DNA from: Hemiscyllium ocellatum
Taxonomy: Eukaryota
DNA: 64,000 bases
Direction: 5' to 3'
NCBI RefSeq assembly: GCF_020745735.1
Contig: NC_083403.1
Location: 89,189,003-89,253,002 of the forward strand
Shown piece by piece: positions 42,901 to 45,900 of the stretch. Position numbers and translations under genes: made by a program. Under the pieces are notes generated by a model. That model was not told where the DNA came from. It saw nothing but the letters and a program-made list of their open reading frames with translations, and did no database searches. Numbering within the stretch: position 1 is the stretch's first letter; every line of letters starts with the position of its first letter.

Positions 42901-45900
42901 GTTAGCTGTCACCACCCTATCAAATTACCTGCTCATTTGTTTGTGGTCTTTCATTTGTGGCATCCTACTATAACATTTCAAAAGTACATCAAAAGTAATT
43001 CATTGATTATGAAGCAACATATTGAGACTGTTATGTAAACTAAATTCATTTGAAGAATAGCTTCAGATAGCAGTAATCCTTTTTTCTGATCTATGCTTTG
43101 CATTTTTTAAATTTAAACTTTTTTGTACCTATTTTGAATATTGAAATTGAATATTCTGGATGGCTATCGTTCTGAACATTATTACAATTTCTTGCCCATA
43201 AATAAGCTCTGAATTTAATATTACAATATTTTCTTCCAATTTCAGAACAAAAGTGAGCTGTTGTCCACAGTACAGTCTTTGGAACAGCTTGGTTATAATC
43301 TGTATGCAAGTTTGGGTACAGCAGATTTTTACACTGAGCACGGGATTGAGGTAAGGGCATTGTATTTCTGTCTGAAATTTTGATTGAACCATTGGGATAA
43401 CTACTGGATAGGCTATAATTAAGAAAGCATCATGGTAACATCAAGAAAAAAAATTAAAGCTTATTGGTTGGATGTAAAAATATGATGTAGGGTCAGTTGA
43501 AAATGTTACAAAAATGATGCACAAGTTAGCATAGTAGATCAGTTATACTTAATAGAGTTCTCTTTGAAGCTGGCAAGAGCTGGTTTCCCTAATGTAAAAT
43601 GTGCCTTTGTTTCAAGCTAATTTAAAACATTATTTTAAACTACATTAAATTGAAACAAATAGCACGATAGAGTTTTGTTCATGTGGAGTTGCATAAAAAT
43701 ATGTTTATGCATAAATTTGGAGCATCTCACTCAGTATTCGATCTTTTTTTCTCTTATCACCTACTGTCATTTAAAACAAAAATAACCAATCCAGATGTAA
43801 CACGGTCAGTTGCAAAACTTCTTTTGCTTAATCTAAAGAAACATTTTTGCTGCAATCTGAGCATATTACTGGCTAAATTCTCAATGATTTTTCAGTTTTA
43901 GCTTCTGTTTCCTTTCTTTTGCAGATCAAGGCAGTAGAGTGGCCATTTGAAGATTCTGACAGTGATGGCCCTTTGAAAGAGAGACATAGAAGCATTGTGG
44001 ACTATCTAGAAGAAAATCATTTTGACTTGGTTATAAACCTCTCCATGAGGAATTCTGGAGGACGACGCCTTTCTTCATTTGTTACCAAGGGTTATCGAAC
44101 CAGGCGATTGGCTGTAGACTACTCTGTTCCATTAATTATTGATATCAAGTGCACTAAACTGTTCGTTGAGGCACGTTTCCTGAAATTTGTCATCTTGAAG
44201 TAGTGCTATTTTCATATGAATTTTAGTTTCGCTGATGAATCTATTTAGTCTGATAACTTATCTTTTCTTCTCTAGGCTTTACGGCTGATAGGCAACACCC
44301 CTCCAGTGAAGACTCATATTGATTCCATGACTTCTCACAAATTGATTCGCTTACCAGGTAATGACATCAGTACTTGTGTTCTTTGTACTTTTTGTCAGTG
44401 TTTGAGTTCTAAATGATCCATCCAAATGGCACATGTGAAAATATTCCTTCCCTGTGCAAGGTTTGTGAAGGTTTGTAGCTCAGGTTGAGGTTTAGGGTGT
44501 AGGTTTGCTCGCTGAGCTGTAGGTTTGATATTCAGACGTTTCATTACCTGGCTAAGTAACATCATCAATGAACGACCTCGAAGTGAAGTGAAGCTGTTGT
44601 CTCCTGCTTTCTATTTATATGTTTGTCCTGGATGGGGTTCCTGGGGTTTATGGTGATGTCATTTCCTGTTCATTTTCTGAGGTGTTGATAGATGGTATCT
44701 AGATCTATGTGTTTGTTTATGGCGTTGTGGTTGGAGTGCCAGGCCTCTAGGAATTCTCTGGCATGTCTTTGCTTGGCCTGTCCCAGGATAGATGTGTTGT
44801 CCCAGTCGAAATGGTGGGGTTTTTTCCTCCGTGTGTAGGGCTACGAGGGAGAGAGGGTCATGTCTTTTTGTGACTAGTTGGTGTTCGTGTATCCTGGTGG
44901 CTAACTTTCTTCCTGTTTGTCCTACGTAGTGTTTCTAGAAGTCCTTGCATGAAATTTTGTAGACGACCTTGGTTTTGTCCACGGGATGTACTGGGTCTTT
45001 TAAGTTTGTTAGTTTTTGTTTGAGAGTGTTGGCCAGTTGTGTGCTACGAGGATTCCGAGGGGTCTTAGTAGTCTGGCTGTCATTTCTGAAACTTCTTTGT
45101 ATGGTAAGTGGTTAGGGTTTCTGGCTGTGTTTGGTCTGCTTGTCATGGTTTGTTCTTGAGGAATCTGCAGAGACATGCCAGAGAATTCCTGGAGGCCTGG
45201 CACTCCAACCACAACACCATAAACAAACACATAGATCTAGATACCATCTATCAACACCTCAGAAAATGAACAGGAAATGACATCACCACAAACCCCAGGA
45301 ACCCCATCCAGGACAAACATATAAATAGAAAGCAGGAGACAACTGTTTCGCTTCACTTGGAGGTCGCCACTGATGATGTTACCTAGCCAGGTAATGAAAC
45401 GTCTGGATATCAAACCTACAGCTCAGCAAACAAACCTACACCCTATTCCTTCCCTGTATTTAACCATGAAGAGTAAAACATGTAGCGCCTGTACATTTTT
45501 CATCTTCAGGTTTAATTGATGTCCATGTACATCTTCGTGAGCCTGGTGGAACCCATAAGGAAGATTTTGCTTCTGGAACTGCAGCAGCTTTGGCAGGAGG
45601 AATTACCATGGTGTGTGCTATGCCAAACACAAATCCAGCAATCACAGACCATGCTACCTTTGCCCTTGTACAAAAGGTAATTTTAACTTGTTATAAATGA
45701 GAAGTTCAGACCAAGTAATTTTGAAATCTAGCCAGACTTTCAGGCAAGCATTACCTGATGTTTAAAATGCATCATCATCAAGCTATTTGCCAACTAATTT
45801 GTGTTTGGTACGGGCAAATTGCACAATTAACTGGGCAGTTTGATTCTATTACTAAAAGAGCAAGTAAATCGTTTGGAGGAACTGAAGTGAAATAAATGGT

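Follow-up and report, generated by a model that had tools for sequence, protein, structure and literature searches.

Does a hammerhead ribozyme core with every catalytic nucleotide in place, lying in the sense orientation in an intron of CAD in the shark Hemiscyllium ocellatum, cut the pre-mRNA that carries it? A first-pass annotation of the window analyzed here (the whole 64-kb stretch of contig NC_083403.1) had recognized the core and held that cleavage would separate the CPSase exons from those that follow unless a complementary arm in the same intron sequestered it. We examined the anatomy of the locus, its homology, covariation within its family and its folding energies, and from these we infer two-ended priming and an absence of cleavage in vivo. 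Jointly, we read the locus as a two-ended insertion of a Penelope-like element (PLE) carrying a relic hammerhead that is inert in the CAD pre-mRNA, with a probability of about 0.87.

The intron in question (44358–45509, + strand) is 1152 nt long; the last CPSase/linker exon precedes it, and the first dihydroorotase exon of CAD (45510–45678, + strand) follows. The exon that opens at 45510 is homologous to human CAD dihydroorotase structures (E 1e-25), its predecessor closes with ...KLIRLPG at 44357, just before GTAATG, and the exons further upstream on the same strand are CPSase-like, one of them matching the MGS-like domain of CPS1. The exon homology and the 44357 boundary bear out the earlier placement of the hammerhead in the CAD pre-mRNA ~105 nt before the first dihydroorotase exon: the motif is intronic and sense, and the distance is 106 nt. 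Without the insertion described below the intron would be 150 nt long. Long fragments of LINE-type reverse transcriptase ORFs also occur in the sense orientation in CAD introns, at 15465–17856 (+) and 39783–40830 (+).

The minimal hammerhead (45367–45406, + strand) reads CCA-CUGAUGA-U-GUUACCU/AGCC/AGGUAAU-GAAA-CGU-C-UGG, with the cut predicted at 45403/45404, directly after C17. The invariant core is complete, with C3-U4-G5-A6-U7-G8-A9 at 45370–45376, G12-A13-A14 and A15.1 at 45396–45399, U16.1 at 45402 and C17 at 45403. Helix II is a 7-bp stem (GUUACCU/AGGUAAU) with an AGCC loop and a closing G.U pair, helix I has 3 bp (CCA/UGG), and a palindromic ACGU at 45399–45402 is present without a helix III hairpin. 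An unpaired U at 45377 separates A9 from position 10.1 and is present in 5/5 relatives, and the AUG at 45376–45378 corresponds to the ORF start of the element. Read position by position, the motif therefore has all the conserved catalytic nucleotides that the first-pass annotation had claimed, and the letters of its two stems and its cut site are as given there. The pattern CTGATGA-N(10-40)-GAAACGTC matched once in the 64-kb window and in none of 100 shuffles. No Rfam hammerhead family reached its gathering threshold across the 64 kb, and the Infernal-type check that had been proposed came back empty as well, with type I, HH9, HH10 and the other Rfam hammerhead models all silent at E ≤ 10 over 44300–45600 (~1.3 kb). 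The missing helix III hairpin probably explains this blank, and we did not count it against the motif.

The motif belongs to an insertion of 988 bp (44456–45443) with a perfect 14-bp direct repeat, TATTCCTTCCCTGT, on both sides, giving a left target-site duplication (TSD) at 44442–44455 and a right one at 45444–45457. The TSD starts with TATT, and the predicted empty site before insertion is ...GTGAAAA-TATTCCTTCCCTGT-ATTTAACC... Inside the TSD, two 5′-truncated PLE copies meet head-to-head at 45166/45167. The longer copy, L (44456–45166, − strand, 711 bp), comprises the RT-EN linker and the C-terminal part of a GIY-YIG endonuclease, and after the ORF stop come a spacer, a hammerhead and a 3′ tail of 107 nt; its endonuclease ORF is broken by two stops and one frameshift, and upstream its minus-strand translation reads ...LRPLGI...KDPV... 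The shorter copy, R (45167–45443, + strand, 277 bp), retains 34 codons at the end of the EN ORF with the stop at 45267–45269, a 106-nt spacer, the hammerhead 106 nt beyond the stop, and a 68-nt tail. The left arm of the resulting inverted repeat (44495–44772) is complementary to 45167–45443 with 15 differences in 281 columns, and an inverted-repeat search placed the arms at 44488–44772 and 45167–45450 (283 nt, 92–96% complementary). Positions 44456–44494 are an extra 39-nt tail found in L only. The tails end 68 and 107 nt after the AUG, in or just after an AC-rich AGCUCAG...CUGAGCU hairpin. Arm divergence is ~5%, or ~2.7% change per arm, and polarization against outgroups assigned three clear derived changes to L and one or two to R, the helix I pair aside, which is consistent with neutral decay of both arms. 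We interpret the whole as one integration event that left two 5′-truncated 3′ ends of one PLE within a single TSD.

Translation showed that both arms end in the C-terminus of the GIY-YIG endonuclease ORF. A phmmer search with a 48-aa endonuclease piece found 231 relatives, of which the nearest were predicted proteins of whale shark and bamboo shark (70–77% identity), and some of the relatives carry RT (PF00078) and HTH_animal (PF26215) domains. Pfam gave nothing useful for the four endonuclease pieces, which are too short, and the PLE assignment therefore rests on the homologues and on motifs seen by eye. In the best-scoring database protein (P0001), a ~100-aa unit containing the PLE endonuclease C-terminus occurs four times in a row, which looks like truncated PLE ends arrayed in tandem and kept in frame.

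Relatives of the element place the hammerhead in a recurring context. The metagenome contig L003 (ENA, 2416–3063), probably host DNA within the metagenome, holds a tandem PLE of the studied family in which an EN ORF stop, a spacer, a hammerhead with a G.U pair at 10.1-11.1 and a new ORF follow one another. That new ORF begins at the A9-U-G10.1 AUG, stays open for at least 213 codons and has an N-terminus like that of PLEs. A hammerhead after the EN ORF stop, in the same layout, was found in both L003 and L005, while L001 and L002 have the EN ORF with the hammerhead absent within the contig and L004 has a decayed motif only. Pattern scans of JGI metagenomes and viral contigs gave no match to the family hammerhead pattern. 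Within the window, an older PLE fragment at 54131–54759 (−) is ~67% identical to the studied element, and its hammerhead (54207–54158) has G12>A and CG>CA and keeps G10.1-C11.1, which suggests that U11.1 of the studied copies arose by CpG deamination. L005 shares this G-C pair with the 54.2-kb copy; both arms and L003 likewise keep G10.1, but with a wobble U as its partner.

We aligned a small set of five motifs, comprising both arms, the 54207–54158 copy and the PLE contigs L003 and L005, so that three of the five came from this window. Base-pairing held in 85% of cells versus 30–45% with slid partners, both sides changed in 9/12 pairs, and no shuffle attained the observed values. Pair 2.3/1.3 of helix I is C-G, U-A, U-A, G-C and U-A across the five motifs, and the three inner helix I pairs covary (U-A/C-G/G-C, C-G/U-A and A-U/U-A). 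Covariation of stems I and II, whose absence had been named beforehand as a refutation, was thus found in the five-motif set, in agreement with the literature, and the alignment argues strongly that the family motif is a real RNA structure. Together, the element boundaries, the homologues and this covariation support the earlier identification of a PLE minimal type-I hammerhead. We regard the motif as the standard minimal hammerhead of a broken retrotransposon and not as a free-standing ribozyme.

The sister minimal hammerhead lies in the opposite arm (44531–44572, − strand) and is antisense to CAD. Its motif at 44535–44568 has two mismatches to the sense motif, U3 and a helix II C>U that still pairs as U.G. 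The core fails at C3, which confirms the inactivating C3>U change reported for this copy. Its helix I is UUCA/UGAA (4 bp) where the sense copy has gCCA/UGGa, and this difference had been offered as a compensatory change in support of stem I. Helix I is indeed real in the family, as the five motifs covary, but taken alone the arm difference is weak evidence, since the arms stem from a single insertion event with a shared TSD. Under random placement of the 14 substitutions between the arms, a doubly hit pair is expected 0.023 times. Outgroups suggest that U-A is the older state of the differing pair. The arm difference is either a coincidence or a sign that two template RNAs, slightly unlike each other, were the source of the arms; copying from two templates by a dimeric PLE particle, a speculative idea to which we give little weight, would explain the compensated change.

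The closest described counterparts are the minimal hammerheads (min-HHRs) of PLEs (Cervera & de la Pena 2014, PMC4209133), which have a helix II of 7–8 bp, a helix I of 4–5 bp, a conserved G10.1-C11.1 pair, a palindromic 15.2-16.2 and no helix III hairpin. In that survey, dual motifs lie on opposite strands 100–700 bp apart, and most motifs are single ones from truncated elements. The CAD motif shares the core boxes, the extra nucleotide after A9, the 7-bp helix II, the short open helix I and the palindromic ACGU, and it likewise lies beside a PLE ORF and is paired with an opposite-strand motif a few hundred bp away. It differs in having G.U at 10.1-11.1 (as in L003) in place of the usual G-C, and a helix I of 3 bp versus 4–5 bp. 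We consider these slight departures from the consensus, and they give no argument for another origin. The published sampling covered bony fishes, coelacanth, frog and reptiles, whereas the host here is a shark.

A biochemically tested counterpart is PAc, a Poseidon element of Anolis carolinensis (Frangieh et al. 2024, PMC11167929). Its ORF starts at the beginning of stem II with an AUG, and cleavage falls 26 nt past that start codon. The PAc protein cuts and extends both DNA strands with a preference for ATT, and reverse transcription starts internally, at an AC-rich stem-loop ~111–118 nt into the ORF. The CAD insertion resembles PAc in using A9-U-G10.1 as the AUG, in a cut site ~26 nt past that AUG, in its AC-rich tails and, as we infer, in the priming of both strands. 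Unlike the intact PAc, the CAD locus holds two dead fragments with 68 and 107 nt of the ORF start. The likeness to Poseidon, one of two candidate clades alongside Neptune, is one of organization. An adjacent inverted 5′-truncated copy and a 30–40-bp tail at one end only are typical of PLEs (Craig et al., PMC8557442); the CAD insertion has such inverted truncated copies and a tail difference of 39 nt, and its anatomy is thus fully explained by the known PLE mechanism.

Two further groups of type-I hammerheads invite comparison. Animal non-LTR retrozymes (Cervera & de la Pena 2020; Li et al. 2026 preprint) also combine PLE-related sequence with a type-I hammerhead, but they are tandem repeats of non-coding units, in contrast to the single inverted pair with PLE coding sequence found here. 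Rfam Hammerhead_HH9, HH10 and Hammerhead_1, each listed there as a separate family, share with the CAD motif a type-I core on the sense strand in an intron of a protein-coding gene, yet none of the three models matches it at E ≤ 10. The amniote intronic hammerheads (HH9, HH10) and Hammerhead_1 have a helix III hairpin, loop-loop contacts, efficient monomer cleavage and conserved orthologous sites. By comparison, the CAD motif appears to have none of these.

This anatomy suggests how the locus may have formed. A PLE with Poseidon-like organization would have cut the 150-nt CAD intron, and both ends of the staggered break would have primed reverse transcription, leaving two 5′-truncated 3′ ends head-to-head within one 14-bp TSD. 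Each copy would have brought the family min-HHR, which sits at the junction of the post-endonuclease spacer and the next ORF start in the tandem element, with A9-U-G10.1 of the ribozyme doubling as the AUG of that next ORF. The sense copy would still have a complete core because the insertion is young (~2.7% change per arm). At that rate, the chance that 16 core nucleotides stay untouched is P ~0.65, and core intactness is therefore no signal of selection. In the CAD pre-mRNA the motif would then be left with no helix III of its own, no sense partner and most of the protein-binding RNA region missing, and it may form a duplex with the other arm.

Other minimal hammerheads occur in the window. 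The one at 22788–22815 (−) has an intact core, belongs to another PLE family and is antisense to CAD (CUGAAGA-A-GGGC/UUAU/GCCC-GAAACGUC); it has G10.1-C11.1 and is followed by a conserved ...GATGCTGCCTGACCTGCTGCGCTTTTCCAGC tail. A second sense core in the CAD pre-mRNA, at 51215–51245 (+), reads CUGAGGA-A-GGGUCA..UGGCCU-GAAACGUA, with no helix I pairing and a downstream tail like that of the 22.8-kb copy. A decayed motif at 35983–36026 (+), CUGAUGA-A-GAGC..GCUU-GAAAUGUC, gave a weak covariance-model match (E 0.39), and its change of ACGU to AUGU looks like CpG decay. Since these further motifs at 51215 and 35983 lie in the same gene, sense min-HHR motifs are evidently tolerated in CAD.

Folding energies were computed for the competing structures, namely the rod, the stem I+II fold, the arm duplex and the hairpin. 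The minimum free energy structure of the isolated 42-mer is an inactive rod in which G5–G8 pair with C15.2–C17 (−11.2 kcal/mol), whereas the fold with stems I and II alone reaches −8.2 kcal/mol. Helix III is out of reach for a monomer, since A-CG-U closed on itself has a loop of just 2 nt. The sole nearby copy lies on the opposite strand, so that the pre-mRNA holds an antisense and not a second ribozyme; the next sense motifs are one of a different family 5.8 kb downstream (51215) and the decayed one 9.4 kb upstream (35983). Paired with the upstream arm, which is transcribed before it, the motif is predicted to reach −61.7 kcal/mol over 42 nt, and the whole inverted-repeat hairpin −640 kcal/mol with a ~280-bp duplex. 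The suggestion that the complementary upstream arm can sequester the motif is therefore supported by a predicted duplex that is far more stable than the alternatives.

Published activity points the same way. Single min-HHRs gave no detectable cleavage, and dimers and trimers were weak and mostly required non-physiological Mg2+ (PMC4209133); dimeric cleavage is also the topic of Lunse et al., which we cite here through a review. The PAc hammerhead is inactive without the PAc protein, no RNA-seq ends fall at its hammerhead site, and its protein-dependent activity needs the first ~172 nt (PMC11167929), versus 68 nt of the ORF start kept in copy R. Cleavage in CAD is unlikely because the monomer folds wrongly, single motifs are inactive in the literature, a sense partner is missing, the ORF start is too short at 68 nt, and the upstream arm can pair with the motif. 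The danger to the CAD pre-mRNA envisaged at the outset, with cleavage separating the exons, is thus unsupported, and the folding predictions and the comparison with described systems indicate that the hammerhead is almost certainly inert there. Against inertness, the stem II hairpin could form co-transcriptionally, ahead of the long duplex.

Three other explanations deserve weight alongside this one. A chance resemblance to the hammerhead consensus, unrelated to ribozymes, could appeal to the failure of any Rfam hammerhead family to fit the motif. We reject it as next to impossible given the empty shuffles, the recurrence of the motif, with compensatory changes, at an unchanged position beside the PLE ORFs of independent relatives, the ORF layout of L003, and a feature-by-feature match to the published PLE motif. 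The sense hammerhead might instead be active in vivo, with the help of a trans partner (a PLE transcript or pre-mRNA pairing through ACGU) or of a PLE protein, so that some CAD pre-mRNAs would be cut after the CPSase exons and before those for DHOase. In favor of this, the core lacks nothing, C17 and both helices (I and II) are present, PLE hammerheads can cut as dimers or with the element's protein, and the genome has many PLE copies with the ACGU palindrome. Yet a helix III between molecules would have 4 bp only, published dimer activity is low and at non-physiological Mg2+, the stretch of ORF start kept falls well below what the PAc protein requires, the competing structures are predicted to be far more stable, and a housekeeping gene tolerates this motif together with two more on the sense strand. 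We judge such activity very improbable, and we would likewise be surprised by cutting at a low rate whenever active PLEs provide protein or partner RNAs; if the latter were true, surges in transposon expression would directly reduce what a pyrimidine-synthesis gene yields.

Alternatively, the ~280-bp inverted repeat could be the functional part, either looping out the insert and restoring a splice-site spacing of ~150 nt or influencing CAD expression as a substrate of ADAR or Dicer. The extreme predicted stability of the hairpin would fit such a role, as would its position, since the insert makes up 87% of the intron, leaving 98 nt on the side of the 5′ splice site and 52 nt on that of the 3′ splice site. 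A head-to-head layout is a routine by-product of PLE integration, however, and the arms decay at ~5% with no sign of constraint, which makes this explanation unlikely in our view. A two-ended PLE insertion with a relic, inert hammerhead remains the reading that we favor.

We regard the insertion as an ordinary retrotransposon fragment in decay, of a kind already well described, and the features of this copy, as far as its sequence tells, are those expected of one. It carries little weight for ribozyme biology, as thousands of such motifs per genome are known in fishes, amphibians and reptiles. For PLEs, the locus is a clean textbook case of integration, with one TSD, two inverted 5′-truncated copies and unequal tails, and its anatomy agrees with recent in vitro work in which PLEs were seen to prime reverse transcription from either DNA strand. 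For the host, it is a case in which a housekeeping gene tolerates the sevenfold growth of a 150-nt intron by a hairpin-forming insert with a sense hammerhead core.
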